A stretch of DNA of 64,000 nucleotides from Eukaryota sp. TZLM1-RC (Eukaryota; Protista; Metamonada: BaSk clade), in assembly GCA_040285825.1 (NCBI GenBank), contig JAUPSS010000004.1:1654550-1718549 (forward strand), read 5' to 3'. The position numbers were made by a program, and so were the translations under genes. The notes beneath the pieces were generated by a model, which saw nothing but the letters and a program-made list of their open reading frames with translations, ran no database searches and was not told the DNA's origin. Of this stretch, positions 4,781-51,661 are shown in pieces. Within the stretch, counting starts at the first letter, position 1. Each line of letters opens with the position of its first letter.

Positions 4781-4998
4781 ATTTTACCAAAAATTAAACC
4801 AAATTTTGTTGTGACGCTTTTCTTGTGGTCACGTCTCAAAGTGAGGAGGCAGGTTCCTTAGCCCAAAAACGAAAACAGCTTTGCAAAATTCTCGTTTCGC
4901 CCCATTGTTGCAATTCTATCACCAACACTTTAAAAACAAACTTGTTCCAAAAGTATTATCAAGAAAAAGAATAGAATTACACAATTGACAAACAGATT

Positions 4999-6240
4999 GT
5001 GTATTTCAACAATAACATCCTAGACCATTACTCTGATTACATCAATCGGCTTGTTGATATTCTCTATGATGTTAAGAGAAACAATAACGTGCTGAAAAAA
5101 CAGGATAGGAACAATTTTTCATCATTCATCAGCAAAGTTAAATCTTTCTTTCTAAAAGGAGGTGGAAATTTTTACAATGAGAAACAAAGTCTCATCAATT
5201 ACTTCGCTTTTAATTGATGACCGGATCCAACATTTACTCCCCAGTAATTCCAAAAGGGAGAAGTATTCAAAGTTTGATTATTCGTCCAAATCAGATTACT
5301 ATTTGAGAGCAATGTTTTATAGTAATAATTGTTTAGCAGAGGAGGAGAGCAAAGTCCTTCATGCTCTGTCTTTGGAGAATTCTTGTATTCCCTCCTATAT
5401 CAAAATTGACAGGACAAGTTATTGGACTTGTTCTTTGCCGAATACAAGGACGTTCTTGGTTACAAGTCCTCCTACCAATGTAATAATCAAGCTGTCGATT
5501 TTGTTTTATGGAATAACTCGTCCATTTTGGAAATGGACGAGATTAAAAACACTAAACTTTATTCAGAAAGTTCAAGGAATATCATGTCTAGTATCGACAG
5601 CGATGGAATAGCAGTATCATTTATTCAATCTAGAATTGATTGAAAAATACAAGGTAACTGCGAAGGTATTGAAAGACAAAGAAAAAATATATTGATATCC
5701 CCGGAATTAATCCTTCTGAATTTCAAAATATGGTCCTTGCGGCTGCTGATCCAGGGAAATCTGATCTATTTTATTTTTCTGCCAATTTAGCTACTTGCAT
5801 TTAAGAAACCCTGAGAAAAATATAAATATGTTCATTTCAGGTACACTCAAAATCAACGAAGATTTGAGTCGAAAAGTTTTAAATTCAAAAGAATAAGATG
5901 CAGCATACAGAATGAGAGTCTTATCACAATAAGTAAGTCTACTGATAGAGTGATTGATCTATCCAATTATGAACAATATGAAGAACAACAACAAAAGATG
6001 GCTTTAAGGAGCAGTATAGTTAATCAAAATACTGAAAGAACAATTAGTTCATTAAGAGAAAAAGTGCCTCAAAAAATTAATATTCCCCACGAAATTTATT
6101 ACTCATTAAATTTGAGTAATAATGGTCGAAAAACAAAATCTGTAGCAGAATGAAAAGCAATTCTATCCCAATTCTATTCCAAAAGCTGAAAGTTTGATAG
6201 ATTTATGGAGTATATTAAACAAAAGAATAAAAACAATTAT
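4999..6240 (+). pseudogene. Fanzor1 (TnpB-like RuvC nuclease) relic, 3'-truncated
   Basis: Successive frames give SSIDSDGIAVSF, VLAAADPGKSDLFYF (RuvC-I) and FRYTQNQRRFESK, all typical of Fanzor1. Many stops; RuvC-II and RuvC-III are missing. Confidence 0.75.
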
Positions 6241-6544: not shown

Positions 6545-8050
6545 ATTTTTTTTGTAAGTAATTTTATTTATTTTTAAAACTACAAACTAAAAATCAATAT
6601 CTTCAAAACAAGCTTCAACACCATCAAACCATACAACAGGAATGTTTTCGTAATGTTCACTGACAGATTTGCATATTTTTTCCTTTTATACAATTCTGAA
6701 TCATCTAGGGGGAATACGAATTGTGCATTTTTTAAGGCATTTTTTCACGCAAACATCAACTGGTACAACTCTAAGATTCTCGGCAAAAGCATATTTTGTA
6801 GAAAATTCAAAAAACAAAAATTTTTCACCCACCAATGGATGCAGCATTAGTCAAAAACTTTAATGAATTAAACCCAACACCACTAAGCTGAACAGCAGAA
6901 AAATATGATTTTTCAAAATTGATGGATCAACAGACATAAAAAAAGCCAAAAAATCTGTACATATTTTGTTAAATTGTCTACAATAATTGTACGTTAAGAA
7001 TACAGGTAGTGATCGAAGTAAATGGGTATCTTCTCTCTGTATAACATATTTTCAAAAGAAATAACTTAAAATGTTGTTCCAATTGAAGGGTTTCAATTAC
7101 ATCAAGCTCTTTCTTGATAGAATCCAAATATTTATCAAGACTATCAAGTGTCTTTTCGGCAGAACCTAAATAACAACCAAGATAACAGAAACTACTTAAG
7201 GTATATTCAATAAATGATACATTCAGAAAATTAATTATTAGCTTAACATTTTTTCTAGAAATACAAAAAACATTTTTGAACATTCAACTCAAGATCAATG
7301 GATTGATACAATGTAGCAGCTTTATTAGCAACTCTATGAATAGTACTTTCAGGACCAATACAGGAAATGTCATCCATATAGACTACCACTTGAAGGTCAG
7401 AATTTTCTTCTGTTAATTTCTTCAAGATTGGATGAATTGCAAGACAAAAAAAGAAAGGTCCTGAATGGTTTCCTTGTTCAACGTCTGATAATGAGTTAAG
7501 ATTAAAGGAATTAAAAATTAAATCAGAAGAATTACCATAAAACCTTTAAAAAAAGGTTTCGAGTTCAGGAAAATTTGATTTGTTTTCTCTCCAAATTGAA
7601 TCTCATTTCACTGAATTGAAAGCATCTTTGAAATCATGATTAAAAATGCAATTATTTTCGTTACAATTGACAAATAAATCAGATGTTAAAGCTGCAACTG
7701 AGCTCCATCTATGGTTTGGATTCCATATTGGAAGGGAGAAAAGTATTCCCTTGCTTTTGTTGAAATTCTGTTAAAAATAACATATGACATCAGTCGATAA
7801 ATGGCTTCACCAATAGCAATTGGCAAACTTTTCCATTAGGTTCCAAACTATTAAATTGTTGTCTGAAGGTTTCAACGATGCCTTTCTATCTTTATAGCCC
7901 ACACTTCTACTTGTTTTACATGTGGCAACTATGTAAGGACTAACCCTCTATAAATTTGCTGATTTTTTGGACCATTTATCTGACTGAACATTTGTATTCT
8001 TGTTCAATTGTTTTAACAATTGAAACAAAATTAACTGATTTTTAGTGGGA
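6545..8050 (-). mobile_element. Decayed non-LTR retrotransposon with RT core and RLE remnant
   Basis: Minus strand reads PIAIGEAIYRL (~7800), DFKDAFNSV (~7620), EQGNHSGPF..LAIHP (~7450) and VVVYMDDIS (~7380). Region 6660-6745 matches 16640-16715 inverted. Confidence 0.75.
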
Positions 8051-11427: not shown

Positions 11428-13210
11428 CGCTACGGCTGTTGGGTCCTCTTGGGTCATTACTTCTCCTCTTCCTAACGATTCCTGGTCTTCTTGCTCGCGG
11501 TGTAGGAATTGGAGTTTGAGTTAGTATATCTGATTCGATTTTGTCATCTAGCGTCTGCTTCACAACCGAATGAAGTTTTATGTCGTCCACTGAGAGTATT
11601 CTTGCACTGTAAGTTTTGAGAAATCTCTGTGTTGAATGAAGTTCAGAACACAACTCAACACCTCTACTTCCTTTTGCTGAAAGAAGTACGAGTAAATGCA
11701 CACACAGAATCCCTTCTTTTTCCAAAGCTCCACATGAGCATTCGTTAGAATCCACATTGACAGTAAGTACAGTGCCGTTCTCTCTCGCTTCAAATTCAGT
11801 TTGGTCCAATTCCACAGCTTTTAAATCTCGAGATTGTAACAGTCTCTGTTCCAGAATATCATTTGCTCTGCAGACAATAGTTGATGATAAGTTTCGTGCT
11901 TCTTTTCTTCTCGTAATACACCATCTCGCCAACATTGACCTAATCGATTCAAACATATTACAATTGGAAGCTGACGAGCTTCTACAATGCACGCATTTAC
12001 ACATTCAACTATGTTGCTGGTAACATGACCACATCTGTTCCCTGGAAATTGATATTCAACCCAATGGTGTGGTTCAGCCGTATTACGGATGTAGTTTGCA
12101 GCAGCTGGACTCACTAACGTCATTTCACGCAACAGTTTCTCGTATTCAACTTTGGAACCGCATTTGGTCAATCGGAATATGAACGGTCGGGCCTTTAAGA
12201 ACCTTTACCGTTGGCATTATCGGCAAGATGCTTTACACAAAATGCATGAGCAGAGGTTTGCAACGTTTTTCCAACAGCCTTGATAAGTCCTTTTTGTCGA
12301 TCAGATATAACAGTAATACCAGTCAAATCAAAAACCTTCTTTAGCTCTTCTATAAACCATTTCCAAGAATCATAATGTTCATTTTCAACTACTCCGAAAG
12401 CAAGAGGAAAAGTATGTCCAGCTCCATCTACTGCTGTGGCAACCAACAAAACACCAAGATATTGAGTCTTAATGTGACATCCATCCAATCCCAACAGTGA
12501 TTTGGTGTATTCAAAGCCTTCAATAGAAGCTTCAAGAGAGAAAAAACATCTATGACAATGTCCTTCTGCATTGAAGTTCACAAAAGCCACGCTTCCTGGC
12601 ATCTTTTCACATATAGCAGAAAAGTAATACGGGAGAAGTCTATAGGAAGATTTCCTGTCACCGTATAAGTAGTTTTGTGCAGCCCTAATTGTCCGTGCTG
12701 CAGATGTACCATTTTTGATGACGGAGCTAGATTTTTCCAACGCTTTGGGCGAAAACAGTCTCTCGCACCTGAAGTCTTCTTTTAAGATGTATGTAATGAT
12801 CTTGGGTGGAAAATAGATCTTCGGAGAGGCAACACATCCTGCTGCATGGTTGACCGCTTTGGTAATACACCAGACCTCAGAATCTATTGGTGCCCTAGCT
12901 ATGATTTTGAACGGACATTCGGAAGCAGTACACCTCACCTCATACCGCGTTTTGTTATCGTTGGGAGCAACTGTGAATTCCTTGTTGTATTGAAGTGCAA
13001 GTTGATGTAAGAAGGTCTGTAAGTCCAATCTCGACTCAAACGTCTTGTGTTCTGTTGCCACCAATGTTGCATCGTTCCTAAGACGTTTAAGATCAATGTT
13101 CATAGGAAATGTGGATTGTGTTGTGAATCTATGAAAGTGTGTGGATTTTGTTTTGCAAGTGTGGATTTTGTTTTATCTTTGAAAAACGTGTGGATTTTGG
13201 AGTTTTTCCT
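11420..13210 (-). mobile_element. MULE (Mutator-like) DNA transposon, 3'-truncated copy
   Basis: LGLDGCHIK, ISDRQKGL, FCVKHL, TSNIVEC and SWIM CSC..CVH motifs. Near-identical to 56422-58190. One TIR at 13105-13210. Confidence 0.92.
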
Positions 13211-13251
13211 ATATTATTTAAAAAAGGGGTAGATGAATGAAAACTCAAAAT

Positions 13252-13308
13252 ACTCAGTCCCTCTCAATCTTCCAAATCTTTCTATTGTTATAGTCAATAT
13301 CTGTAAGA
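13252..13308 (+). promoter_or_regulatory. Shared ATG-proximal cassette, copy 1 (PSMA4)
   Basis: ACTCAGTCCCTCT...ATTGTTATAG-TCAATATCTGTAAGA-ATG; homologous to 26893-26958, 31158-31221 and 44976-45021. Confidence 0.7.
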
Positions 13309-14095
13309 ATGGCACATCGATACGATTCACGCACTACGATCTTCTCTCCTGCTGGTCGTCTTTTCCAGGTTGAATATGCGATGGAAGCAATATCACATAC
13401 AGGCGCTTGTATAGGTGTTCTGTCAAAAGACGGCATAGTTCTTGTAGCCGAAAAGAAAGTTGCTGGTCAACTTTTAGATACATCCCGTCCTGAAAAACTT
13501 CTAACAATCGATGGTCACGTCGGCGCTGCGGTGGCTGGCATGACTGCTGATGCAAATGTCTTAGTTCAAGCAGCACGTACTGCTGCTCAGCGGTACCTCT
13601 TTGCCTATCAGGAACCAGTTCCCATTGAATACCTAGTACGAAGGGTGTGTGATGTGAAGCAATCATACACTCAGTTTGGTGGCCTTCGTCCCTATGGTGT
13701 TGCTTTCCTTTATGCTGGCTGGGACAAGCGTCATGGTTTTCAACTCTACCAAAGTGATCCATCGGGTAATTACACTGGATGGCACGCAACAGCCATTGGA
13801 AACAACTCTAGTGGAGCACTTACGATGTTGAGATCTGAATACCAGGAGAACTGCACTTTGGAGCAGGCAAGAGATCTCGCAATGAAAGTCTTGGCCAAGA
13901 CTGTTGAAGCTGTTTCATTGACCTCGGATAAGAGTATGATTTCCTTGATTCTCACTCACTTTAGTTGAAGTTGCTCTTTTGTCAAAGCCAACTGAGGACG
14001 GGCCTGTGGAATTTAGGACCTATAACAAATCAGAAGTTGAAGAATTGATTAAGCCAATTCTAGAAGAACGAGATGCTCGACTTTCATCAATGTAG
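13309..14095 (+). CDS. PSMA4: 20S proteasome subunit alpha3 (one 31-nt intron, 13934-13964)
   Basis: RYDSRTTIFSPAGRLFQVEYAMEAI and YTQFGGLRPYGV. Removing gtatga...ctcactttag restores KIEVALL and gives a stop at 14095. Confidence 0.96.
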
Positions 14096-14142: not shown

Positions 14143-16038
14143 TTAATCATCTTTATTGAGAGTTTTGTTTAAAAAAATTGACATTAATTCTTCCTCAAAA
14201 CGTTTGGAATTTTCAGTGTACCTTGATATTAATTCTACCAACTGAATTTGATCTACGTTATACTCTTTCCAACTATAGAAAATATTGATCTTGTCAAGTA
14301 AAGCAGAGACAACTTGGCATGTCAAATCAAGAACTTCTTCAAAACTCCGAATGTACAAAGGAATCAACACTGTGCAACAATTCAAAATGTAAGAAAATTG
14401 TTCAATACGTTGGAGTGCTAAATCAAAAACGTCATCAATCAAATCTGACTGAATTTCGGTTGAACTACATTGAAATCGAGACAATAATTCTATAAAATCT
14501 CCACCAAAACTTAATTTTACAATTACTTTGGAGGTAAAAAACCTTGAGTGATTAAGAAAAGCAACAATAGACCGAAAACAATGAGAAGATGATGAAACTT
14601 GATCCTCAGAATTAAAGAAACCAGATAACAAAGAGCTCGAGTTTGAGTTGTTCACAATTGGTAAAATTAATTCATCTTTATAGGGGTTCAAATCTTGTTG
14701 AAATAGTATAATTTGTTGCAACAAATACAAATTGGAATTAATTTCATCACAGTGATGTAAAAGAAAGTCACAAGACTTCCTGAGAGTGGCAAGACTTAAG
14801 TTGACTGCTGAGCTGGCAATTGATTGAAGATCACTTGTCCTTAAAATCCGACAATTTCGTGAAATTAATGACACAGAAGAAAGGATCACAGGATGACGTG
14901 GCAGAACGTCATCAGGTAGGTCAAGAAGAACTGAGGGGTAAACATCAGTAACATCTTCAGGAATTAAAGCAAGACGAGATCCAATTTCTTTGAAAGAAAA
15001 GTTTTGCAATTTGCTTTTAAAATTGGATAAATTTTGTTTAATAAACGGAACAAGGATAATATTCAAGACTTCATTTACAGCGTAATTATCAATAGCATCA
15101 ATTAAAACTCGACAAACTACTGAACAACTGTCAGAAGATTGGCAACTTTTCAAAACTTTCGCCAAATATTCATTGACCAATTGAGCAATTGAATTGAGAA
15201 AAAAGGATAATAAATTTGGTAATTCTAATAGACTATAAGACAAGTTTCTTTGAGCCAAAGCAAATTCAGCTTCAATTCTGGAAGAAATGATAGTACATAT
15301 AGAAGTGACTACAAAATCAAATGATTGTACAAAACTTTGTTTTTTGAAAATCTTATCCAAATCTTTTGCGGTTTGAGTAACGACATTACAATTTAATCTA
15401 AATTCGCCATATTTTTTGACAACTTCTTCTAAATGTTTAACAGCAAAAGGTCTACCAACAATAACTGAACAATAATCTGAAAGAACATCAGAAATAGGGG
15501 CATGAGGAGACATTGAATTAATACAAGAAAGGGCAAGCTTTGTTATGACTCTAAATCCTTTGGTAAGGTGATCTTGATAGGTAGTGATGTACTGTTGAGA
15601 GGCGACAAGGTTCTTGTTGGCTGAAAAGAAGGCAAGACACTCTTCGCAACGAGTCAGGGCCTGTGAAAACTCTTGAACAGAGCAAGAAAGGGTGGGTGAC
15701 TGAAAGATGTGACGAAGATCTTTAGCGTCCATGTAGAATTTTTTAACTAAAGAAACTTGAGACGAGAGTTTTACGAGTTGATCTTTCTCTTGAAGAAGCG
15801 GCATACACTGTTGTTGAAGAGTGAGAAGGGAACTAAAGATTTTGGAATAGTTGATACGGACCAGACGCATGTTATTCTGGGCATCTGTTATAATGTCCAA
15901 GGAATTAGTGAGGTGATTGTCCTTGTGCTTTAAAAGAGTGAGAAGGTCCCCAAGCTTGTTTTCTATTGAAAAAGTCATTAGATAAAACACAAAGTGTAAA
16001 AATAATTGAAGTATCATTTGTGTCACTTCAAATTTCAT
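14143..16038 (-). CDS. COG3: Conserved oligomeric Golgi complex subunit 3 (Sec34); true start may be the Met at 15978
   Basis: QSPTLSCS..F..LTRCEECLAFFSANKN and NLYLLQQIILFQQDLNPY resemble COG3 blocks (NSPTLSV..LDDCI, LFLIKHLLILREQIAPF). Confidence 0.7.
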   Translation of the reverse strand: MKFEVTQMILQLFLHFVFYLMTFSIENKLGDLLTLLKHKDNHLTNSLDIITDAQNNMRLVRINYSKIFSSLLTLQQQCMPLLQEKDQLVKLSSQVSLVKKFYMDAKDLRHIFQSPTLSCSVQEFSQALTRCEECLAFFSANKNLVASQQYITTYQDHLTKGFRVITKLALSCINSMSPHAPISDVLSDYCSVIVGRPFAVKHLEEVVKKYGEFRLNCNVVTQTAKDLDKIFKKQSFVQSFDFVVTSICTIISSRIEAEFALAQRNLSYSLLELPNLLSFFLNSIAQLVNEYLAKVLKSCQSSDSCSVVCRVLIDAIDNYAVNEVLNIILVPFIKQNLSNFKSKLQNFSFKEIGSRLALIPEDVTDVYPSVLLDLPDDVLPRHPVILSSVSLISRNCRILRTSDLQSIASSAVNLSLATLRKSCDFLLHHCDEINSNLYLLQQIILFQQDLNPYKDELILPIVNNSNSSSLLSGFFNSEDQVSSSSHCFRSIVAFLNHSRFFTSKVIVKLSFGGDFIELLSRFQCSSTEIQSDLIDDVFDLALQRIEQFSYILNCCTVLIPLYIRSFEEVLDLTCQVVSALLDKINIFYSWKEYNVDQIQLVELISRYTENSKRFEEELMSIFLNKTLNKDD

Positions 16039-25185: not shown

Positions 25186-26892
25186 CTAAGCCCAGGTTCT
25201 ATTAACATGTTTCCTTTTTGGAACACTACTGGCTGAACCTACAACATCAGTAGAATCAACAATAAAAGAAGGCAAAACTAACGAAGAATCAAATGCAAAG
25301 GATCTATATCTAAGTAAATCATTTGGGAAGCCCAACTGAATAGCCAAAATATTTACCTTATAGAGGTCAACATGTGGGTGAAAAGATGACGTGACGATCT
25401 GCAATTGATTTGAAAAACAATCAAAAGATTTAATTAAACCAAAACCAATTAATTTTGCTGATTTACTGGGTCTACTATTCAGAATTTTAGGGGCACTTGA
25501 CACCTCCAAATTTTCATCAAAATAAAGGGAAACAAGGTAACAAACTATATTGGATCCCAACTTGCGCATATAAAGCTCACTATTCGAAATTTTGGTAAGG
25601 AAAGAAGGCAGATACAGCGGTGGGCTGAATAGAACCAACCCTAATGATCGCAAATCAACAAGATGTGATCTCTTCTCGAAAATTTGTGATGTGAGAAGTT
25701 CATAATACTGCATAACCTTAACAGAGCCGGTAGTAACTAATTCGATTATCTTGTTAATTAAACCAAGTATGCATTCTAAGTCATTCAACCAAGCAAAAGT
25801 TAAAGAATCTCTCAAAATCTGGGGTTTTAGTTTATTATAATCAAGTTCTAATGAAACTTCACTCTTTTCCATTCTTGGTAGAGAAAAAACTAAATAAGAA
25901 GGCTCAATGACAGGGCATGACGTGTCATTTTGAGCTTGATTGATGACATCAGCACCCCATGATTGCCAGTCAGAAACGTTGGTTTCCGATGCCAAGATGA
26001 TTGGTGATACCTTTTTAAATCCTCTTTGTGATAAATAGCTTTGAAACTTGCCCAATAAAGTGATTAACAATTCTTTACCAAAACCAGAAGTCCAACCACA
26101 CGTGTTAATGACGATTGGTGACGTGTCAAAGTTGCTGATTACGAACTTGAACAGTCGACACGCAAGATCTATATAGAAGGGAATATCTGAAGATGGCGTA
26201 TTTGACGCAAATGAAAAAGTTTTGATTAATTCTAAACTATTTGATTCGGCATTCAAAAGCCTGCCTATTGAGGAAGGAGTGACAATTGATTTGATTGAAA
26301 CTGCCGACATATGGTTGGGTGGAGCAAAAAATGATTGACCACAATCAAGATCAATCAAAGTCACCTTCTGATTACGAGAAGCAGTTAGAAATGACGACAA
26401 ATATGAACAAAAAACAGATTTACCAGAGTCTTTGGCTCCTACTACAAAGTAAATTTGAGGAGAAACAGATCCCTGTCCCTGAGCAAAAGATTCCCAACAA
26501 GGAGGAATTACAAGAGGGGTATACGAGCAAGAGGAAGGGTCTGATATGGGAATGAAAGAAGTAACAGGGTACAGTGGAGCCATGGGGGGTGAGTCAGGTA
26601 GAGAAGGTTGAGTGGGAAAGGAGTTGTGAAGGGTGAAAGTAGTGGCTTCTGATGTGGATTGAAGGTAAAGAAGAGGACCAAAAGGAAGGGAGCAGATAAA
26701 GGAGTGAGGTTTGGTGAGCTGGACACCGCCAATCAAAAGAGATCCAGATTGAACAGTAATGTTGGCATAACCTACAAAGGGAAGGACACAATTAGCAGGA
26801 ACAATGACCTGTGCATGGGAGTCTGTGGATGTGACTTTAGTTAAGTCCCAGTTGCTTTGATAAAGGAGTTCTATATTAGAATCATCAGTCAT
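25186..26892 (-). CDS. NOL9: Polynucleotide 5'-hydroxyl kinase NOL9/Grc3 (Clp1 family)
   Basis: P-loop VVGAKDSGKS, LIDLDCGQS..PP and IVINTCGW. Confidence 0.85.
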   Translation of the reverse strand: MTDDSNIELLYQSNWDLTKVTSTDSHAQVIVPANCVLPFVGYANITVQSGSLLIGGVQLTKPHSFICSLPFGPLLYLQSTSEATTFTLHNSFPTQPSLPDSPPMAPLYPVTSFIPISDPSSCSYTPLVIPPCWESFAQGQGSVSPQIYFVVGAKDSGKSVFCSYLSSFLTASRNQKVTLIDLDCGQSFFAPPNHMSAVSIKSIVTPSSIGRLLNAESNSLELIKTFSFASNTPSSDIPFYIDLACRLFKFVISNFDTSPIVINTCGWTSGFGKELLITLLGKFQSYLSQRGFKKVSPIILASETNVSDWQSWGADVINQAQNDTSCPVIEPSYLVFSLPRMEKSEVSLELDYNKLKPQILRDSLTFAWLNDLECILGLINKIIELVTTGSVKVMQYYELLTSQIFEKRSHLVDLRSLGLVLFSPPLYLPSFLTKISNSELYMRKLGSNIVCYLVSLYFDENLEVSSAPKILNSRPSKSAKLIGFGLIKSFDCFSNQLQIVTSSFHPHVDLYKVNILAIQLGFPNDLLRYRSFAFDSSLVLPSFIVDSTDVVGSASSVPKRKHVNRTWA

Positions 26893-26958
26893 TGTTAGAG
26901 ATGTTGTCTATAACAATGAAATAAGTGTCCTTTTTACACCAATGTAGAGGGACTGAGT
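26893..26958 (-). promoter_or_regulatory. Shared ATG-proximal cassette, copy 2 (NOL9)
   Basis: Minus strand ACTCAGTCCCTCTACATTGGTGTAAAAAGGACACTTATTTCATTGTTATAG-ACAACATCTCTAACA-ATG. Confidence 0.75.
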
Positions 26959-27099
26959 TTTTGGACCTATTGTGTAGGGTCGTGTATAAGTAATTGACTG
27001 ATTGTTGGACTTCAAAAATCGTTCAGAATTCTGCACATGTAGAAATTCAAAAAAAACTCAAAAAATGCATGTTTTTATTCTGTAAAGTGAAAAGCAATA

Positions 27100-28775
27100 T
27101 GTGAAGTAATTAAATCTGATCTTTCTGAGCTATCAAGAGTTTTCTACCAGTTTTATGGTAAAGAATCAGATTTAATATTTAATTTATTTGGTTCAAAATC
27201 ATCTTCTGGCGCGAGCAAATGTCTTCTGATTGGCTCTTCTGCTCATGATCTTGTGACAAACGATTCTGTTGTCCCTTTTACTAATAGTAGTGATGCTTCT
27301 AAGTTACTTGGTTGTTGGTTAGGAAATGTGCCTCAAATTCGGAATGAATTACAAGTTATTTTTGAAAAAATGAAAATTGAACTTGATTCAATTTCTTCTT
27401 TTGATTTAGAAAAACATATTAAATTTTTCATGCTTAAAATTTGCTGTACTGGGAGAATAACCCACATTTTGAGATTTTGTGCTCCTTTTATAGCACTCAA
27501 TTTTTGTTGTTCCTTTAATTCATTGAGAACAGAATTATTTACTGATTTATTGAATGTGAAATCAGGAATGTTGAAAAATCTTTTATTTTCTTCAGCAAAT
27601 TTGGGTGTTATTGGATTTGCTAAATCTTCTAATTTGTGTCGATCAGCATTTTTGGGTGGAGGTAAGAAATTTATTCATGAACTTTCTGGTAGATTTCCTG
27701 AAGTTTTTCAATTGTTAGTTCTCAGTTTCAGTCCATATTTGCATGAGTTATTTTGTGAACTTGATAGATTGCCACCACAAATTTGGACCAAATGTTTTCC
27801 TCAATCAATTCAAGAAATTCCAAACCGATCTCTTTTTAATTTGCAGTTTTGCTGTAAAAAGCTTCAACAAAGATTGTCAAAGATTTTTGAAATCGTGGAT
27901 TCTGATGTTAGACTTGGCTTGGCCAAGAAAAAGAATCCCGCTTTTGCAAATCTTTTACAAGATATGTGTGACAGTACTTCTTCTGTCTTAGTAACAACAA
28001 TTCCACAAGTTTATGGTACTCTCTTATCCGATTCTGCTTGGACTCTGAATATGAGATTTCGTTCCTTTATCTGGCCTGATAATTTACCTCATAATTTAAT
28101 TTGTAAATGTTTCCGAGAAATGGCAACTACTCATTTGTTAAATTGTAAACATTTTATTACTTTTAGAAGCAAGGTTCACGATGCTGTAAGAGACCAGTTA
28201 TATTGTATGTGTAAGTCTCATAGAATTGAATCCTTCTTGGAACCTCTGTTGTCAAATCTGTTTGATACTGAAAATGATTATCATAAGAATAATAGAGGTG
28301 ATGTCTCATTACCTGCATTAGATGGAACCTTCATTTTATTGGATGCAATGTCTGTTGATCTTTGTAATGCCTCAAATGAAAGGCTTGCTAATTCTGAAAT
28401 TCATAATCCTCTTTCAAATGCTGAAAATTTCAAAATCAAAAAAATACAATAAACCTCTGTCCAAATTGTCCAGTAAACAGCATGCAAAATACAATTTGTA
28501 TTCATTTGCATTTTTTCTATTTGGTTCACTTGTTTAAATGGCTATACATTTTTTCGGCAGATTTGGCAGTAACTATAAAGAGAAGAACTAACAGAAATTT
28601 CAACAGATTGTTTTGGCAAAACAGAATTGTGTTTTCTATTTTTAAGGGGATGTTGAAGATGGTTGCTGATGTTTTGTTTTCTTTTGGATCTCACTGTGAG
28701 AGAATCGCATCTACTGTTTTTGTTTTGGGAGATATGAATTATTTAGATGTTGATTTATAGGTTTTTAATAAAATT
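27100..28775 (+). mobile_element. RLE non-LTR retrotransposon family B with RT core deleted
   Basis: ORF 27253-28452 has the post-RT region (KLLGCWLG), Zn knuckle and RLE. Upstream, SSG joins directly to SKCLLIG, so the QGD/YxDD region is absent. Confidence 0.85.
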
Positions 28776-29201
28776 AATAATACAAAGAAATGCATGTTTT
28801 TATATACGCTAATAAATCTTATTAATAATACTGTAGATATTCTTTCCCACACTCACTCATCATTGTGGTACCATTAGTCTATCATGTTAATTATCATGAA
28901 TATGAAATTACGTAATCCTGTACATGTGTAGAGCACTGTTAACATCACTATCCAATCCTATTTGTTGATGAATTGGAAACAGATGACATGAAGAAAGTGG
29001 AATGGTGATGTGAATGAATTGAGTCCATTGAAAAGAAGACAAAAAGAAAGGGGAAGAAATGATGAATTGGTAGGAAAATATGGTTGTAAATGGTTCCACT
29101 GTTATGCACAAACAAACCAAATGAAAATCAAACCAAAATAATCAAAAAGGAAAAACCATTTACACCCCTAGTACAAAATAATAAATTTGTGACGTCACAT
29201 T

Positions 29202-30536
29202 TTTTGGCGCTTTAAGGCTTATATAATATGATTGGAAAATAAATCAACTTTTCCTCATAGACTTCTCTTTACTACAATAGACATTAGGCCACAATAATTA
29301 TTGGCCATTTTAAAGTCAAAAGGTATACCATAACTTCAGCATTAGTGAACATACTAGTAACCATGTTCCAGAAACCTTCACAGCATGTCAGACATCATTC
29401 AGCAAGATATCTCTGACCCCAATTCCTCACCTAACATACAGCAACAGGAACCAGCAAGATACACACATACACATAACGAAGAAGGTAACGAGGTAACGGA
29501 CCCGGATCCCACCTCCCCCTACAAGAAAGAAGAAGTTGAAAGAGAGGACGAGGTCCCTCCTTCAGACGAGAAAGAGGTAACGAGAACGGACCCGGCTCCC
29601 TCTCCCCTCCCCAATATAGAACCTGTCTCAAAGGGTACGGATGAAAATCCTGCCTTAGACACGTTTTCCCCACTGGGAGAGTATGAAGAAATTCAATCTC
29701 AATTAGATGAGATGGAAGAAGAAGACGACTCCAGTGATGCAGTCTACAAACTCTTAACAAGGACGCAGAGCCTTACCTCGATTCCATGGACTTTTATCCA
29801 TACAAGCAGCTCCCTTCCTTTATGGACCCAACACAAAAAAAGTCGACTACATACGAGGTTACAAATAGAGACTCCACCTCCACTATTATTGACTACAATG
29901 GCAAATATACGGTCGTTGCTCCTCTGATATTTTGAGTCGTAAAGGCAGTACTTCAACAACAAAAGACGCCGCCTTCAGGTTTCTGAAGTTTGTTACTTCG
30001 CTTACTGTTGTTTTTGATCCAACATAGACCCTGCATGAACACTAGCGAATCCATTCTTCGATTCCATGATATCTTTACTAAACGACACTATCACGTTACT
30101 CGTTTACGAAAAAGGGAAGAAGCAGAGCGTATTCATGTAGCGATTAAAACATACACAACAAAGTAATCAAACATATAGATCATGGAACAAGGCCCTTTTC
30201 AGTTATTACTTACTATCTTATACTAACATTATTGTAGGAGAGTCATAATACATCAATTGTCGATCTTAAGAATGTAAAACCAGTGTTTGCGTGAATCCCA
30301 ATCACTGCTAAAATATTTGTAGACAATAGAAAACATAGGAATTTGGTATTTAGTTCTTAGTAGTCATAGTTATTTAGTTATTTGTTCATAGTTTTAGTTT
30401 CATATTTCTATAAGCTGATTTATTTTGAAAAAGGGAAGAAGCAGTGTTGGCGCCCTAAGGCTTATATAATATGATTAGAAAATAAATCAACTTTTCCTCA
30501 TTGACTTCTTTTTACTACAATAGACTTTAGGCAACA
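29202..30536 (+). mobile_element. Small non-autonomous LTR retrotransposon (92-bp LTRs, PPT, 4-bp TSD CATT)
   Basis: Direct repeats at 29202-29293 and 30445-30536 (3' copy TGTTG...CAACA). Purine tract GAAAAAGGGAAGAAGCAG lies immediately before the 3' LTR. CATT flanks both ends. Contains an acidic/Pro-rich ORF at 29385-29927. Confidence 0.8.
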
Positions 30537-31157
30537 CATTGACGTATTTTGTGCAACCATACTATGAATTTATGTTCATATGTGTCTTTTCTTTCGAAGA
30601 ACATGAAAAAATACTTTTGATTGATAGATAACCTAGCCCCAATGTCTCATTTGGGTTTGTTTTCTTCTTCGCAAACTTCTATGCTGTCATAAAGGACACT
30701 TGGTTACAAGGATGGCAATAAAATGTATTTGTTTAGGATTTCTATGGATTTCAAATCAAATGTAAATTGTTGATAATATGATGGAAAAAATGATTGAAGA
30801 AGTGGATGTCTGTATATAGAGCTTTTACATTTTCAATAAATCTGAATCACCAAGTGTAAATGAACAAAATGGCTGTGATGAGAACCGATTCCCAACCTCA
30901 ACAATTCTCGACTTGAAATGACACTGATTTTTCTTTCAATTTAATCATTCTTCAATTTAATGGCCTTGAAAATAGAATATAATTAATTGCAGTTCCGAAC
31001 TTGATAAGTCTAAAAGAAAATACTGTATTGAGATAAGACCAAACCAAAGACTTTGTAAAATCAACAGAGGTACTGTAAAGCTCATTCACCATAGAAAAGA
31101 ACGGTTTAGAGAACAAGAATTTTAATCAATGAACAGACATTTATTTGAGTTGCCAAA

Positions 31158-31221
31158 CACTGTCCCTCTACATTGGTGTACAAAGGAAACTTTTTCATTG
31201 TTATAGCTCACATCTGTAAGA
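31158..31221 (+). promoter_or_regulatory. Shared ATG-proximal cassette, copy 3 (LRR gene)
   Basis: GTCCCTCTACATTGGTGTACAAAGGAAACTTTTTCATTGTTATAG-CTCACATCTGTAAGA-ATG. Confidence 0.75.
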
Positions 31222-33369
31222 ATGGATCGTTTGCAAGCTCTTCTTTCAGAGGATCCCCATGCTTCCGTTGTTGACCTCTCTAATTGTGATATTAAAGGTG
31301 TAGGTCCCTTGACTTCTCTTCTGGGCCAGTTTACTTCATTAACGCATCTTGTTCTATCAAACAACCATGTTTCCAGTCTTCCTGAAGATCTCTCTCATTG
31401 CCTACCGCATCTACGTACACTCGACATTTCATATAACCCCATTGAAAATGTTCACTCTGTTCTTCCTGGACTTCAATCGCTCCCCAAGCTTCGCCACCTT
31501 TTTATCAACCTTCCAGACGAGGAGCAGGAAGATGAAGTCATTGTTACTCTCATCTATTTGCGCACTTTTAACAATGTCCAACTACCTGAAGCTGATGAGA
31601 GCGAAGACGAAGAACAAGTGGCAGACACTCCCAAGATGTTGTCCGCTAACTCTAACCCCAACTTTAACCCCAAACCAACCCCAACCCCAAACCCCCCTCC
31701 CGCTAATGAAGTCACCATGGACCCTCTCAACGATTATGAGTTACCCTTGCTGGCTGACCTCTATACCAGAATTTGCTCAATGATTGGTTACCAAGATGAT
31801 TCTATTTTTGAATCTCACTGCTCTGATGTCTTTAAAAATCAAGCAGATCTAAACGGAAAAGTCAAGGATGTTCAAGCCCAGGAAGCTCTTTTTGACCTAT
31901 GTAGATTGGAACTCTTCAGTGTTTTATTTAAGCCTATTTGTCAGGTTTTGAGCAAGAATTCCCCTGAAGTTGGGTCAATAGTCAGAACTATTTTTGACCG
32001 TGTTTCCCGTGCCACGTCATCCATCACGTCATCTGTCACATCATCAGTCTCCGATTTAGTCCAAAAACTGGGTTCAGCTAGGGAATCATTACTTGCAGCT
32101 GAAAGGGAAACCACAGATTTACTTCACGCAGCAGAACTTTTGGAACAGGAAACCAAGACCCACAGAAACGAAAGACAAGCAGTAATGAATCAGTTTGAAA
32201 AGGAAAAAAGACAATTGAGAGAAGAAATTGGGTTATTAAAGGTTGAAAATGAGAAACTCAATATTAGGGTTCGTCAGTTGAGTACTCAGCAAGCCCGAAG
32301 AGCTCAAAAGGAAGGTCAGATCACATCATCTAGGTCAGAAGTGATTGAAGTCAAGGATAGTCCTCGTGAAGTCAAGAAGAATCACTCTGATGACGATCTA
32401 GTTCGAGCAAAGAGTATGATCTCTTCCCTAATGGCCACCGCTCCCAAGCCGACTGTATCTAAGCATAGGGACTTAACCCTCAAACAAACCACTGAACTCA
32501 TTGAAGAAATTTGGGAAAGTAAAGTAAAAACGGATAAGAGAAACCTTAATGCTAAAATTCCTCTGGAAACTCTCAATGAGCATATCTTTTCTTATCTTAA
32601 TACTAAATATGGATTACCTTCATTAGTAATGGAGATGGCTGGAGCTTTGACCAATGCCATCCATAGATACAAGACACAGTCGAACTTCATTGCGGTGTTC
32701 TTTCATACATTACGGAGTGAAATTGATGAAGAATTTAGACATGTGCAAACTCAATTAGAAAAGACTGTCAATGAACTATTGAGGGCCCAGCTGAGGGTTA
32801 AAAATCCTTATCTTTCGGAACGGGATTTGTCAATCAAAGTCAAGAAGAAGGTCAAGGGTTTTCTGAGCGAAGAAGAGTGGGTTGATGTCATCTCTTACCT
32901 TTATGCACATGAAGATGCCGTTTCTGTCACAATGAAGGTTAAACTTGAAGTTCAACGTACGAATCCCAAGCCAAAATCCTTATCTCCCGCCACGAGACTT
33001 CGTCTTCAACAACTACAAACTGTAGGACGTCTTGACCAGCATGATGAGGAAACCAGGGTAGCCTTGAATCCTAGTGAAGCAAGCAAAATTTCTTATGATA
33101 ATTTCTTGAAGGTTTTGCTCGATTTTCAGCTTGATGGACATTTGAAATTTTTGTCAAATTTTGTTGTTTTGTTTAAAAAAGTCGATGGTGACTTGGACGG
33201 AGCTATCTTTGAAGCTGAATTTATTGAATTAATGAAGTTGCTAGATAATTCAAAAAGTCAGATTCAAATAACCAATGCTATTAATCAGTTTGACCCGCAC
33301 GGAATTGGAAGGTTTACTTTTAGTCAATGTGTTCAATTTCTATCAAATGAGTTGGTTAAGGAAACCTAG
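31222..33369 (+). CDS. Leucine-rich-repeat / coiled-coil protein with C-terminal EF-hand-like motifs
   Basis: LxxLxLxxN repeats (LTHLVLSNN, LRTLDISYN), a central coiled coil, and DGDLDGAIFEAEF and DPHGIGRF. Confidence 0.85.
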   Translation: MDRLQALLSEDPHASVVDLSNCDIKGVGPLTSLLGQFTSLTHLVLSNNHVSSLPEDLSHCLPHLRTLDISYNPIENVHSVLPGLQSLPKLRHLFINLPDEEQEDEVIVTLIYLRTFNNVQLPEADESEDEEQVADTPKMLSANSNPNFNPKPTPTPNPPPANEVTMDPLNDYELPLLADLYTRICSMIGYQDDSIFESHCSDVFKNQADLNGKVKDVQAQEALFDLCRLELFSVLFKPICQVLSKNSPEVGSIVRTIFDRVSRATSSITSSVTSSVSDLVQKLGSARESLLAAERETTDLLHAAELLEQETKTHRNERQAVMNQFEKEKRQLREEIGLLKVENEKLNIRVRQLSTQQARRAQKEGQITSSRSEVIEVKDSPREVKKNHSDDDLVRAKSMISSLMATAPKPTVSKHRDLTLKQTTELIEEIWESKVKTDKRNLNAKIPLETLNEHIFSYLNTKYGLPSLVMEMAGALTNAIHRYKTQSNFIAVFFHTLRSEIDEEFRHVQTQLEKTVNELLRAQLRVKNPYLSERDLSIKVKKKVKGFLSEEEWVDVISYLYAHEDAVSVTMKVKLEVQRTNPKPKSLSPATRLRLQQLQTVGRLDQHDEETRVALNPSEASKISYDNFLKVLLDFQLDGHLKFLSNFVVLFKKVDGDLDGAIFEAEFIELMKLLDNSKSQIQITNAINQFDPHGIGRFTFSQCVQFLSNELVKET

Positions 33370-40664: not shown

Positions 40665-42335
40665 TGAATATGTTGATGGACAGCTGACCAGAGTTTTTGT
40701 TTTACGCTTCCCTGAAAACAGCCATTTCCTAATCCATTTGATCTCCAAAAACACATCACCAACAATTTTGAAAAACCCTTATTTATTGTTTGAAACAAAA
40801 GGTAATGACTACACCATATGTCTTCAAATATGGATAATGTCGTATAACTTTATCACACCACACGAACGCAACAAAAGTCAGATTGTCTGTAGAAGCCTTG
40901 GCTGATAAGAGATCCAGGAAACCTGATTACTATGAAACCATACGGATTAGAAAACATACCCTACAAGCTAAGGTTGAACGGCCAGGACCTCGAATGACAT
41001 GCAGAAATTGAACCATTATCTGCTTGAAATATCAACTAACGGTGACTATAAGGACTATGAAGGTAATAAAGAAAGACGATCATTGCTAAAGCAGCAATTA
41101 TATCTGAGTGCTCGAAATGCATTGAGGAGAAATACATTTGATTCCTTTATAAGAAAACAGAAAAGATTTAGCTCAATTGTCAACAAAGTGAAAAAATTTG
41201 CAGACGGTCGAGACCTAAAAGCAATGTTAGAATTCCGAACGTTCGCAACCCTTCCGAACATTCGGCCGAACTAGTTTTTGTTCATTTACACGTGTCAACA
41301 CAGTTTTGTATAAAAATGTTTTCCCAAATCCCTATTTCAACTACTACAATAAATTTCATTGTTTAAAAATCGGTATTCATACATAAATCCCCTTCTTTAC
41401 ATCAACTTTCTTCAATACCAAAGCACCCTGTTTACAAACTTCTAGACAACGTAAATTACGATAAAGTGTCCAACAATATTACTTCACAGTGCCGCTGCTG
41501 CAGTAAAATGCTAAAAGGTTCAGCCCGTCGCTTTTCCTCCCATTTCATTAAGGAGTATAGAGCTGGATACCAAGATCTGGATGTACTCAATTATCCACCA
41601 TTTCTGTCAAGGATATAAACACTGTCCTAGGTTAATGACCTAGATTTAGATGTTGTAGAACTTTCTGAATAAAAGTTTACTTTGTTGGTTGATAGTGAGT
41701 ATAATAGTATAAGGAAGGAGGAGATAAACAGCGTATTGATATTAATGAATCAAAACGAGATGCCGAACTAACCGAACGCATCAGTAGGTGCCGAACGTTC
41801 GGCCGAACGTACGCCGAACTAGTTCAGTAATTCTAACATTGCCTAAAAGTGTGGTTTGGCAATGGAGGTGGCACGTCAAAAAGTGAAAACACCGCGTAAG
41901 GTGTTTCTCAAGTTGTTACAATGTTCATTTGCTGATGTGAAGATCGGAAATGAATATATGACATCTGCAAAGGTGAACTGCTGCAAGATGCTACACCAAA
42001 AAATCTATCGAGAAGTTGATGGTGAAGTTAAAGTTCACAACGCCTACTTCAGTTGTCCGGGATGTAATCAAGTATGGTCTAGAGACATTTGCGTATCACT
42101 AAATCAGCTACAAATTGCAACTAGTTAGCACTACTATGAAACAAGACCAAAATCGTTTCAGAGTCCACAAAGAACTAGCTTCAAACTACGTATTGTTTTA
42201 CAGGAAAAATGGGCTCATTGATAATGGTGGCCAATTATTCAAGGATTCTAGAACGTCTGTGGACGATCTCACCAAGGATCAAAGTTCCTGGAATAAGTTT
42301 GGATGATGCCTTGAAGAAAGTAAGCATTTCAGATG
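40665..42335 (+). mobile_element. Fanzor1 family F2 internally deleted copy, interrupted by a hAT derivative, with intact right end
   Basis: Segments match 23440-23510, 22555-22800, 22135-22340 and 21636-22130 (inverted). The 3' non-coding region is conserved to 42335. Confidence 0.85.
41222..41841 (+). mobile_element. 620-bp non-autonomous hAT element (13-bp TIR CAATGTTAGAATT, 8-bp TSD CCTAAAAG)
   Basis: TSD at 41214-41221 and 41842-41849; perfect TIRs. Region 41628-41822 is the inverse of 38611-38805. Confidence 0.93.
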
Positions 42336-43097
42336 TGGTTACACAAGAGTTAGTGTTAAAAGGTTAAGAAAACTGTTCTAAGTTTCACTTCTCAAAAAAA
42401 TCAGTCCGTCCACATCTAGAACCAGTTTTTGTTTTGTTTTTGATGGTTGGAAAGTGGTTGAGGGTGGTTTTGAATCAATGGTGGAATTGTTTTAGGTATA
42501 GGATTATCAAGAAAAATTGATGAAGATTGTAAGGGTTTAGGGGACACAAATGGAGGTGGTGCCTTGCATTCCATGTGCAAGAACTCTGATCATAGGGGTA
42601 GTTGCTAAAAGGTGAAAATCCTCCACTCATTAGCAATCAATTTGAAATTGCCATCAGCATGTCAGACATCATGTCAGACAGCGAGATCATCTTGACTCTT
42701 CCCATTCTTCTAACATTATGCAACGAAACGAGAAAAAGGATGACGAGGATACTGACCCAACTCCCACCTCCTCCTTCAACCTGTTCTTCACAGAACAGCA
42801 CAGTATTTCCTCCCGAACTCCTCGGTCGGGAACAGTTCCTGCTTTACAGGATTAAACGGAAGGTCAGACCCTCGATTTCCTATCAGAATCGTCGTTCTGA
42901 TCCTGATTGTGGGGGTAGAGTATTGCACTTTTTTCAATCATCATGTGGGTCATGATAAGGGTGCTGTTGAATCAGCCATGGTGCTAATCACCTTAGATAT
43001 GGGATGTTTCTTTTGTTTATGTTTTGTTTTATATTGATGTTATATTGATGTTTTTGAGTTTGTTGATTTTTGTAATTTAGATACCTGCACTGCAGAT

Positions 43098-44916
43098 ATG
43101 GGATGCTGTGTCTTAAATTGTTCTTTTGACAATGTTCAGTTTGATGATTATGATTATAATTTATCTTTTCAATCCAGTAGCTGCCAACATCTTCTATCAA
43201 AAAACCCCTTTACTGTTGATTTAACAATGGATGGAAATGTTGAAATAAATTTCGGTCCCAAAAAGAAAAGCTGCAATTTTAAATCAACTCGTCCATCAAA
43301 ATTATTAGAAAAGCGATTTTTGAACAACAAACATCAAAGTGTCAGCTGGTCATCTTTACCAAAATCATGATGGCCAATTTTTCCCTCCTGACGAGATCAT
43401 TAACGAAAAAGGAAAAGACGGTGCAAATTTTTTGAAAAAGAAAACTGATGAGCAAATTGAAGAGTGGATTTCAGATCAAAGAGTGTTTGTTATTTCGATT
43501 GTTATTGGTAAGTTTGACCGCCGTAATTTCTTTTTGGAGAGTAAATATTCACTCATGTTGAGAATGAGTCCTCAAGTCAGCAGATTACCAGACACTGATA
43601 TGGATATTCAAACGGAAATTTTCTCTAAAAAAAGATCATCAAATATTCCTAAAACCAGGAATTACAATTGCCCAATATATTTTTAGTAGAGAGAGAAAAC
43701 CTTATCATGTTTGAAAATTGTTAAACAAACATTGAAGGATGATTGATCATCTACACAGGCGCTGAAAATGTCAATTACACTAGCCCAAATTACGAAATTC
43801 AAACCACCTGAACAATTTGACTTTTGGTCTAATATTCTCTATTTAAACCAACCAATGTTCAACCAAAAGATTTACCAATTCAACAACATTATCCACGCAG
43901 ATGGATTTACTATTGCAGTGGAATCTGTTCGTCGGGATTTACAAGGTCAGAAATGTAAGCCAGACAACAAGGCTAGTATTTCTGATTTATATATTGATGA
44001 CGTTGATGTTGATACTTTTCAAGACAAACGAATTGTTGTTTGTGATCCTGGAAAACGTGATTTATTGTATGTTGGGAGTAAAATAACGGATCAACAATTG
44101 GCCATGGTGCACGAAACTGAACAGCAAAGAAATATTCGGCTGATGAATCAAAACAAGAAGTACAAATGGCTGGGAATGACTCAGATGTTCTGGTCTTTGA
44201 AAAGTAGGATAAATGAAAAACAAAAACAATGGGCTAAAAAGTATACTGGGGTAGATTACGACATGAACCAAATGATAGAGTCTAACGAAATAACAATAGT
44301 AGATGCAAACACCAAATTGTCCGCATTTGCTGCCAATTCAACATCTTTTATAGATTTTTCCAACTTTGTGGTTGCCAAACTTCAACAAGTTTTTTTGACA
44401 ATTGACTTTTAAAATCTTGACTTGTGGAACATTCATAAAATGCAAGCTTTTATTCACCAGCAAAAGACTGAAAGTTGGTTATTAAAAAATCTTGTTCAGC
44501 AGTTTTGCAACCCAAAAGACACTTCAATTCTAATGGGTGATTATGTTAAAAAAGGTTCCAAGAAATTGAAACATCAGAGACTTACTCGAAGCATTGGATG
44601 GACTCAATTTCTGAAAAGAAATGGATTTGAAGTATTGATGATTAATGAAGCGTTCACTTCAGCAAAATGTCCTGCTTGTTTTGAAAAGGTTGCTACGTTT
44701 TTGAGAGTCGCAAAGCCCAGATTCTATAGAAGGGAAAAGACTGCTGTTACTACATTTCATGGTTTATTAGCTTGCACCAGTGAAAGTTGTAAACACAATA
44801 TCAAAGGCTCAACAAAGATTTTCAATAGAAATAATCTGGCTTGTCTGAATATGTTTGCAATTGCTGAAGCCAGAATGAGTGGTAATGAAAGGCCTCAGTA
44901 TCTGTGTAGTAGATAG
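43098..44916 (+). pseudogene. Fanzor1 family F1, near full-length with stops/frameshifts
   Basis: FNNIIHADGFTIAV, VVCDPGKRDLLY (RuvC-I), ILMGD, INEAFTSAKCPAC, HGLLAC..C and FNRNNLACLNM..RPQYL. In-frame stop at 44410-44412. Confidence 0.9.
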
Positions 44917-44975
44917 TTTTTGTAATTATTCCACACGAAAATAGATCATGTGCCAATGGGAATTTCTCTCATCAC

Positions 44976-45021
44976 TGTAAAAAGGACACTTATTTCATTG
45001 TTATAGACACTATCTGTAATG
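44976..45021 (+). promoter_or_regulatory. Shared ATG-proximal cassette, copy 4 (SAE1)
   Basis: TGTAAAAAGGACACTTATTTCATTGTTATAGACA is identical (34/34) to the NOL9 copy; 15 nt separate TATAG from the second ATG (45022). Confidence 0.75.
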
Positions 45022-45843
45022 ATGACAGATCATGTTTCATCAGAAGAGGTTCAACAATATGACCGGCAAATTAGAGTCTGGGGCTTTGAAACACAATCAA
45101 GACTCAAAAATGCCCGTATATGGGTAGTTTCTTTAAACAGTGTAGGGTCTGAAGTGGTCAAGAACCTAGCTTTAGCTGGAGTGGGTTCGATATTGCTCAT
45201 TGACAACAGATTAGTTTCAGATATTGCACCTCAATCTTTCCTTATCCGTCCGGATGCAGACCCTTCTCAAACCGTTGCACAGGCCTCGTTAGACAGTGCT
45301 TTGTCCATCAATGCACATTGCAACATTATAGTCAAAGAGGACCTGAATCCATGCTCTGATGATATTGTTATTCATTGTTCCACTATCTTGGAACCAATTG
45401 ATACCATTTGTCCCAGAGTTTGGTGCTTCTCGGCCAGCCACCTCTGCTTTTGTGGCTTTGATTTCGAAGGATCAGGGTTTGCCAGCATTCTTAGTCGATT
45501 GAAGGCCTCTGCATTTGTATTTTCTGGTCATTTGTCTTCAGTTTTGTGTACTTTTCTCTCTTTAATGTATTTTATCAATGTTGAAAGGAAATCACCTTCA
45601 TTTTCAGATCTCTGTGAATTTGTTAATTCCAAAGTGTCTAAATCTCAACAAAAATCTACAGACTCTGTCTGCAAGCAGGTATTCGATTGTTTTCAAAGCA
45701 ACGAATCCAATTACCCAGCTTCTATGGCCATTGCAGGACTTTGCTGCCAGGAAGTTATCCGGTTTATTGGGAAAACGGATGGAGTGGATGGTATAATATT
45801 ATTTGACCTTGAGGAAGGAAAAGCACCAATTGTTTCTCTTTAA
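45019..45843 (+). CDS. SAE1: SUMO-activating enzyme subunit 1 (Aos1)-like E1 half
   Basis: EEVQQYDRQIRVWG..Q.RL, EVVKNLALAGVGSI and IAGLCCQEVIR; 274 aa. Confidence 0.85.
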   Translation: MMTDHVSSEEVQQYDRQIRVWGFETQSRLKNARIWVVSLNSVGSEVVKNLALAGVGSILLIDNRLVSDIAPQSFLIRPDADPSQTVAQASLDSALSINAHCNIIVKEDLNPCSDDIVIHCSTILEPIDTICPRVWCFSASHLCFCGFDFEGSGFASILSRLKASAFVFSGHLSSVLCTFLSLMYFINVERKSPSFSDLCEFVNSKVSKSQQKSTDSVCKQVFDCFQSNESNYPASMAIAGLCCQEVIRFIGKTDGVDGIILFDLEEGKAPIVSL

Positions 45844-51517: not shown

Positions 51518-51532
51518 AAGTTAATAGCACAC

Positions 51533-51661
51533 CTGAGAATTTGACACAAAGTGAATATTGAATAAATATCCCTAATAATTGTGTAAACTTCTCAGCACCA
51601 AGGGTTAGTATACACTAAACACCTTGGAAATACGTTGATGAAAACAGCTATTGCTGTTTTC
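51533..51661 (-). ncRNA. Putative Fanzor omegaRNA scaffold (family F3)
   Basis: Three consecutive hairpins: 51640-51661 (perfect 9-bp stem over the stop codon), 51598-51627 (CCAAGG/CCTTGG) and 51533-51595 (CTGAGAA..ACACAA/TTGTGT..TTCTCAG). Confidence 0.6.

Follow-up and report, generated by a model that had tools for sequence, protein, structure and literature searches.

Fanzors are eukaryotic RNA-guided nucleases, and what service they render to their own elements in eukaryotes is not yet settled. Mobile elements that target gene starts are familiar from other groups, with Ty3 inserting at Pol III starts, Tf1 and the P elements at Pol II promoters, and SLACS/CZAR in spliced-leader genes; all of these belong to the retroelements or the DDE transposons and are tethered by proteins, and we know of none for which an end at a constant distance of a few bases before the start codon, and in a single orientation, has been reported. 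In the IS200/IS605 elements, a specific target motif abuts the left end and not the right end. For TnpB and Fanzor, the 3' transcript runs from the ORF end through the right end of the element and into 14-15 nt of flank, the latter being the guide (PMC13565253).

The subject of this analysis is a short cassette lying directly upstream of several genes in a stretch of 64,000 nt (the window) of contig JAUPSS010000004.1, assembly GCA_040285825.1, deposited as 'Eukaryota sp. TZLM1-RC' and placed by protein look-ups. The cassette is very probably the right-end (3') terminus of a Fanzor1 element family of Skoliomonas litria TZLM1-RC, the body of which was later lost while the last ~60-70 nt were kept as the 5' region of the host gene. 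This cassette-bearing Fanzor1 family is here named F4. As in the right ends of TnpB and Fanzor elements (the ISDra2 reRNA and Fanzor1 of Spizellomyces punctatus, SpuFz1, which is homologous to an F4 paralogue protein), there is conserved non-coding sequence that overlaps the nuclease ORF at its 3' end, stops sharply and is followed by a variable flank. The S. litria copies, which are known here from DNA sequence, differ in that the flank invariably consists of the opening codons of a host gene in the same orientation, and in that stubs of 60-70 nt persist without the nuclease. A full-text literature search found no mention of start-codon placement in Fanzor papers, nor does a 2026 review of OMEGA systems mention it; the Skoliomonas genome paper contains no discussion of promoters, UTRs or transposons.

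F4 resembles the IS200/IS605-type elements in having no terminal inverted repeats and in its subterminal hairpins, which are predicted, and the pairing of a CATT hairpin foot with the AATG of the junction recalls the guide/cleavage-site pairing of that group. The F4 junction word, unlike the IS200/IS605 target motif, lies at the right end, and a word of 3-4 nt cannot pick out start codons alone. Pfam scans of neighbouring ORFs revealed no Y1 TnpA. Position-specific integration relative to a gene start is shared with Ty3, Tf1, the P elements and SLACS/CZAR. Solo LTRs and other exapted transposon fragments are likewise short terminal remnants kept before a host gene after loss of the body; the F4 stub differs from them in being 60-70 nt long, in abutting the ATG to the nucleotide and in deriving from the 3' end of a Fanzor, and its promoter role is putative.

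Cassette copies and their register to host start codons

A sequence-only reading of the window had described one cassette at a fixed spacing before the ATG of four unrelated genes (PSMA4, NOL9, an LRR gene and SAE1), had taken it for a copied module kept in single-nucleotide register, and had noted 34 nt of identity between NOL9 and SAE1, an alignment of about 60 nt between NOL9 and the LRR gene, and the lack of the cassette elsewhere in the window. All of this was borne out. The strict pattern ATTGTTATAG-N5-ATCTSTAA-NN-ATG matches the window four times with no mismatch (Table 1), compared with a mean of 0.01 matches per dinucleotide shuffle, where none of 100 shuffles reached 5. BLAST returned 34 identical nt common to the regions upstream of NOL9 and SAE1, and the NOL9 and LRR-gene cassettes align over 46 nt at 93% or over 66 nt at 86%. 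When the four upstream regions were compared by BLAST over 1.5 kb each, likeness did not reach further than 71 nt from the ATG. The cassette is present at 4 of roughly 15-20 genes in the window and was found by nhmmer at no others; at least three of the other genes have different Fanzor tails just upstream (an RRM gene at 51517, a 787-aa gene at 21573 and an LSM gene).

The ATGs at the four cassettes are the true starts, because the Proteasome_A_N signature occupies residues 5-27 of the PSMA4 frame read from the cassette ATG, the other three frames contain CLP1_P (NOL9), LRR (LRR gene) and ThiF (SAE1) domains, and PSMA4 begins at this ATG in the public annotation as well. Of two neighbouring ATGs in SAE1, at 45019 and 45022, the latter is the one in register.

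Copies were counted in ~250 kb of S. litria TZLM1-RC, comprising the window and nine loci, a sample biased towards Fanzor loci. With a strong copy defined by an nhmmer E of 5e-10 or better, 11 were found, and 11 of 11 abut the ATG of a co-oriented host gene; placement relative to genes is thus not random. The distance from TATAG to ATG is 15 nt in ten copies and 16 nt in one. By context, four are linked to an F4 element, four are solo stubs (PSMA4, NOL9, the LRR gene and PBDC1) and three are abutted by an element of a second Fanzor family, F1, described below (SAE1 and two others). The host genes are functionally unrelated, including a proteasome gene, a SUMO E1 gene, NOL9, BBS7, a galactokinase-like gene and a CCCH zinc-finger gene, among others.

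From 5' to 3', the cassette comprises the last 8-9 codons of a Fanzor (..QKLSPSTLV), a TAA stop at -44 to -42 and a 41-nt non-coding tail, the conserved part of which runs from -41 to -5 and ends ..ATCTGT (counted on the NOL9 copy). Positions -4 to -2 vary among copies, whereas 10 of the 11 have an A at -1, as compared with 25 of 51 ordinary gene starts; the four bases before the ATG are probably host DNA. Box C as a general start-codon context was ruled out by the 51 gene starts. Two hairpins are predicted, the first with 82% of cells paired and the second with a foot that pairs CATT with AATG, and so with the host start codon. Pairing in hairpin 2 reaches 90% of cells in register, compared with 32-62% when the sequence is slid. 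Neither hairpin, nor the 256-nt consensus fold, showed two-sided covariation.

The 5' limits of the solo stubs lie at -71 (NOL9), -67 (LRR gene), -61 (PBDC1) and -57 (PSMA4, with a 9-nt internal deletion). At the 5' edge of the PSMA4 stub (window 13240-13257) there is a short direct duplication, AAAACTCA / AATACTCA, and at that of PBDC1 (L007 ~4830-4855, minus strand) CCCTACATCAT is present twice; these duplications may be scars of cut-back events.

Table 1. Cassette, Fanzor and predicted-fold features located in the window
Feature	Position	Strand	Description
Strict motif matches	13284-13311; 26890-26917; 31197-31224; 44997-45024	+; -; +; +	pattern search, 0 mismatches
F4 relic	4393-6228	+	corresponds to F4 -3597 to -626, 3' end missing; blastn 81-85% to L012 and L013; also L007
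PSMA4 solo cassette	13252-13308	+	nhmmer E 5e-10; box A and terminal hairpin kept; middle diverged, 9 nt shorter
NOL9 solo cassette	26893-26963	-	-71 to -1 from ATG 26892-26890; 93% identity (72-75 nt) with the F4 copies of L007 and L013
NOL9, last F4 codons	26963-26937	-	-71 to -45
NOL9, former F4 TAA stop	26936-26934	-	-44 to -42
NOL9, hairpin 1	26953-26927	-	-61 to -35, predicted fold
NOL9, hairpin 2	26918-26890	-	-26 to +3, predicted fold closing on host ATG
LRR-gene solo cassette	31155-31221	+	-67 to -1; nhmmer E 3e-18; former stop TAA mutated to TAC
Detached 5' piece of F4 tail	42350-42414	+	~-110 to -51; 33-nt local alignment to F4 tail crossing -71
F1 Fanzor element	42629-44971	+	left end common to L004 and L005; right end common to 8 copies; PF07282
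SAE1 cassette, 3' part only	44976-45021	+	-46 to -1; 5' part displaced by F1 right end ending 44971

The comparison with related species that the earlier reading had called for was made at NOL9, where the orthologue loci of TZLM3-RCL and GEM-RC1 (36% protein identity to the S. litria gene) have no cassette, and neither has any of 18 gene starts there. The cassette therefore appears lineage-specific, as expected for mobile DNA, a sample this small being by itself also compatible with low frequency. A strict-motif scan of metagenomes gave one exact match where ~1 is expected by chance on a rough estimate. This 28-nt match, on the minus strand of contig WNFU01202666.1 (L001, 2173-2200), has weakly cassette-like sequence upstream, no Fanzor and no ORF after the ATG, and is probably due to chance.

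The F4 Fanzor1 family as probable source of the cassette

Two of the further cassettes lie in one locus (L007), at the ATGs of BBS7 and PBDC1. Upstream of BBS7, 900 nt run unbroken from the cassette into the C-terminal coding region of a Fanzor, the ORF of which ends ..RERDASLNMLAVMEAHVKGGDRPEYLQR, followed by a K/S-rich extension, ..SQKLILSTLV and the stop. Box A (ACTCAGTCCCTCT..) consists of the last codons of this ORF and the TAA within GGTGTAAAAAGG is its stop. The Fanzor ORF joined to the cassette contains the motifs of the RuvC-III/zinc-finger region (..CKSC..NRDRNASLNM), and the F4 C terminus aligns to that of the F1 Fanzor (E 1e-8). A protein search identified the F4 paralogues P0044 and P0047, both with PF07282; P0047 matches the Fanzor1 structures 8GKH (E 5e-14) and 9CF0 (E 1e-12), from Spizellomyces and Parasitella, and the annotated P0044 protein ends ..SQKLSPSTLL, reading through box A. 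The C-terminal extension of F4 appears to be real coding sequence, since a metagenomic relative, P0046, also has an extension after the ..RPxYL motif. A further ORF upstream of the BBS7-linked F4 (L007 15567-16340, minus strand) has an HW...ECG pattern and the look of an Ulp1-type protease, with no significant Pfam match.

Three loci (L011, L012 and L013) were picked blind, by F4 protein similarity alone, and in all three a complete cassette follows on from the Fanzor ORF without interruption and stops at the ATG of a host gene. The hosts are an unnamed 394-aa gene, a CCCH zinc-finger gene and, at L012, a GHMP/galactokinase-like gene, whose galactokinase signature falls at residues 7-35 only when the frame is read from the cassette ATG (10530); in the public model this gene starts 81 nt too late (L012 10530-10611). 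Throughout the ~250 kb, each stub, and each F4 copy whose 3' end is intact, is fused to a co-oriented host start codon.

The cassette thus overlaps and directly follows a Fanzor ORF, with continuity in four loci, in each of which homology with the Fanzor gene continues for more than 600 nt past the cassette; its 3' limit is sharp, at ..ATCTGT, after which come the variable positions -4 to -2 and unrelated coding sequences. Identity among F4 copies is 88.4% in the body, 92.6% in the cassette and 94.7% in the tail, the excess of cassette over body being modest. All four F4-linked copies are 5'-truncated, at different points (-674, ~-1250 and beyond -2300), and consequently the left end of F4 was not recovered. 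The sequence-only reading had held that the transposons present do not explain the cassette. That view is overturned by the F4 right end as source, and an F4 relic lies within the window itself.

F1 elements at SAE1 and other readings of the cassette

The element adjoining the SAE1 cassette belongs to the second Fanzor family, F1, for which seven further loci were collected via paralogous proteins. F1 begins with ATTAGCAATCAATTTG, a limit shared by three copies (42629 in the window), and finishes GGGAATTTC(C/T)C(A/T)CA, with ..TATGGGAATTTCCCACA at the right end in eight copies. The copy at SAE1 is decayed, with ORFs spanning 43768-44916 and a weak match to PF07282. F1 was considered as the source of the cassette and rejected, as in four copies (one in L002, one in L007 and both in L006) the right end runs into unrelated DNA or straight into a host ATG. 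In the remaining four the cassette comes next, at -60 (SAE1), -51 (L003), -68 (L012) and in a degenerate case (L004). The tree of F1 copies has a star-like shape, in which those linked to a cassette do not form a clade. With four copies lacking the cassette and no clade among the rest, F1 adjoins the cassette or sits inside it but is not its carrier.

Several F1 right ends show further arrangements. At L006 11177-11193 (plus strand) the right end ..GGGAATTTCCC is fused directly to the ATG of a diacylglycerol-kinase-type gene, and at L006 16146 and L007 11228 right ends lie 33-56 nt before host ATGs. An insertion of ~495 nt within the F1 tail at L003 (11198-11692), flanked by a near-duplicate of GTGTATTTAT (ATGTATTTAT on the right), parts F1 from the cassette at a myotubularin-related gene.

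The SAE1 locus appears layered. From left to right it consists of an F2/F3-type relic (40994-42322), the detached F4-tail piece, 214 nt of unique DNA, F1 and the 3' part of the cassette. The detached piece is probably the other half of the SAE1 cassette, split from it by the unique DNA and F1. Simple insertion of F1 into the cassette was rejected, as the left flank of F1 is not box A and the box-A piece lies 214 nt further left across unique sequence. The arrangement fits repeated Fanzor insertions upstream of one start codon, each trimming the previous tail.

The F1 junctions bear on a different and improbable reading, that the 70-nt cassette is an independent module (a promoter/leader of the host or a very small mobile unit) and acts as a landing pad, F4 and F1 inserting at or close to its 5' edge by a guide or target match and the solo copies being empty sites. 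The stub limits do cluster within ~15 nt (-57 to -71), as such a unit would predict, yet they are close and not identical. At L012 the right end of an F1 copy meets the full cassette at exactly -68, before a DUF3161 gene (1864-1933), but the F1 junctions as a whole fall in three registers (-51, -60 and -68), and thus there is no single shared F1 guide. That four of nine F1 copies adjoin a cassette although these copies are not a clade, that the tip of the F1 right end resembles box A, and that the right-end flank of TnpB is the guide (PMC13565253) would all be accommodated. On the other side, the F4 ORF would lack its last 8 codons and stop without the cassette, with the P0046 extension supporting real coding; the detached piece at SAE1 likewise shows homology across -71; and the arrival of the module itself at 11 start codons is left unexplained.

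A native conserved core promoter or translational-control motif of a regulon, unrelated to mobile DNA, is a very unlikely identity for the cassette. Near-invariance of box B and the hairpin, with a variable loop, would suit such a motif, as would an initiator-like word, TCATTG, at -27 to -22 with an A-rich stretch ~15-20 nt upstream of it. The contiguous homology of 66-71 nt is nevertheless far longer than a factor site and enters the Fanzor gene by more than 600 nt in four loci; a host core promoter would be a short motif kept at orthologues, whereas the cassette is absent both from the NOL9 orthologues and from the 18 gene starts in the two sister species, and the host genes share no function. 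From the sequences compared, continuity with the Fanzor ORF appears essentially to exclude this reading.

Least probable of all, and close to excluded, are two suggestions of the sequence-only reading, the retroposed relic of a spliced leader and a module acting as trans-splice acceptor. The cassette does end beside the ATG, and ..TTATAG resembles a 3' splice site; the sequence after the AG is conserved too, however, the AG lacks the -7 branch A, as had already been observed in that reading, and the 5' third of the cassette is made up of C-terminal Fanzor codons and the stop. The stand-alone SL-RNA gene for which a search had been proposed did not appear: no free-standing copy followed by a GT donor occurs in the ~250 kb, and the Rfam search gave no SL-RNA-like gene, a tRNA being the sole family found. 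To our knowledge, SL trans-splicing is not known in metamonads. A MITE or TIR terminus was dismissed, the likeness being one-sided, ending at the ATG, with no inverted partner or second end.

Putative role of the retained F4 tail and neighbouring features

If the cassette is the F4 right end, its present role is likely that of a plug-in promoter or 5' leader, judging from its persistence. Insertion would have displaced the native upstream DNA, and since PSMA4, SAE1 and NOL9 are intact nonetheless, the last 60-70 nt would have to supply a core promoter and/or leader. A role of this kind would explain why stubs stand before housekeeping-type genes, why they share a common minimum length and why they show extra conservation. 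Two MULE transposase copies are present in the window (12195-13209, minus strand, and 56402-57416, plus strand; ~96% identical over 827 nt), and a protein look-up of the transposase returned the window's own locus only. The end of one copy lies upstream of the PSMA4 cassette at a distance of ~43 nt, a gap with little space for another PSMA4 promoter.

By analogy with TnpB and Fanzor, the cassette would also be the 3' part of an omega-RNA scaffold, with a guide that reads into the first codons of the host. The pairing of the CATT foot with AATG in the predicted fold is suggestive of a part in start-codon choice, and is too short to suffice.

After docking, the body of the element would decay or be trimmed by later insertions, including F1 Fanzors landing at -51 to -68, with the last ~60-70 nt kept as core promoter and/or 5' leader. 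A wider account is offered tentatively and with rather less than even confidence. F4 would integrate in one orientation ~4 bases upstream of host start codons, perhaps with the CATT/AATG hairpin foot involved. The host gene, its native upstream DNA displaced, would come to rely on the 3' tail of the element for transcription or translation. Selection would lock this tail in place even once the nuclease is lost, so that a sizeable share of genes would now have stubs as their obligate 5' regions, and the omega-RNA guide would read the first codons.

A Fanzor right end that is always fused to a start codon would, if true, represent a new targeting rule for a DNA element, in which the last 60-70 nt of F4 outlive the nuclease before core housekeeping-type genes. 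In addition, the compact genome of this protist would then offer a concrete example of many genes that have come by their 5' control regions from transposon tails. The guide predicted on the first codons of the host makes a regulatory or 'addiction' role directly testable. For gene annotation, the cassette explains a recurrent problem, of which the late start of the L012 gene model is an example.

A second, unrelated cassette family was also observed, with ~110 nt up to the ATG common to a DPCD gene and an RsmB-type methyltransferase gene (L004 ~6752-6860 and L002 ~14241-14350, both on the minus strand; window 51518-51560, minus strand). Its last bases, ..GTGCTATTAxCxxATG, resemble the tail of the best-preserved Fanzor of the window at its junction with the RRM gene.

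High-copy repeats lie at 27072-28860 and 29255-30633, with a sharp repeat limit at 27072, and a 399-aa ORF (27253-28452) for which Pfam gave no match. Sequencing-run contigs over 26300-32200 derive from low-coverage DNA and represent mainly these two repeats and almost none of the genes, and they reveal neither transcript starts nor joints or leaders; in run X1, contig depths are 100-500 in the repeats as compared with 2-3 in unique DNA. The sole Rfam match in the window is a tRNA gene at 60650-60731 on the plus strand.
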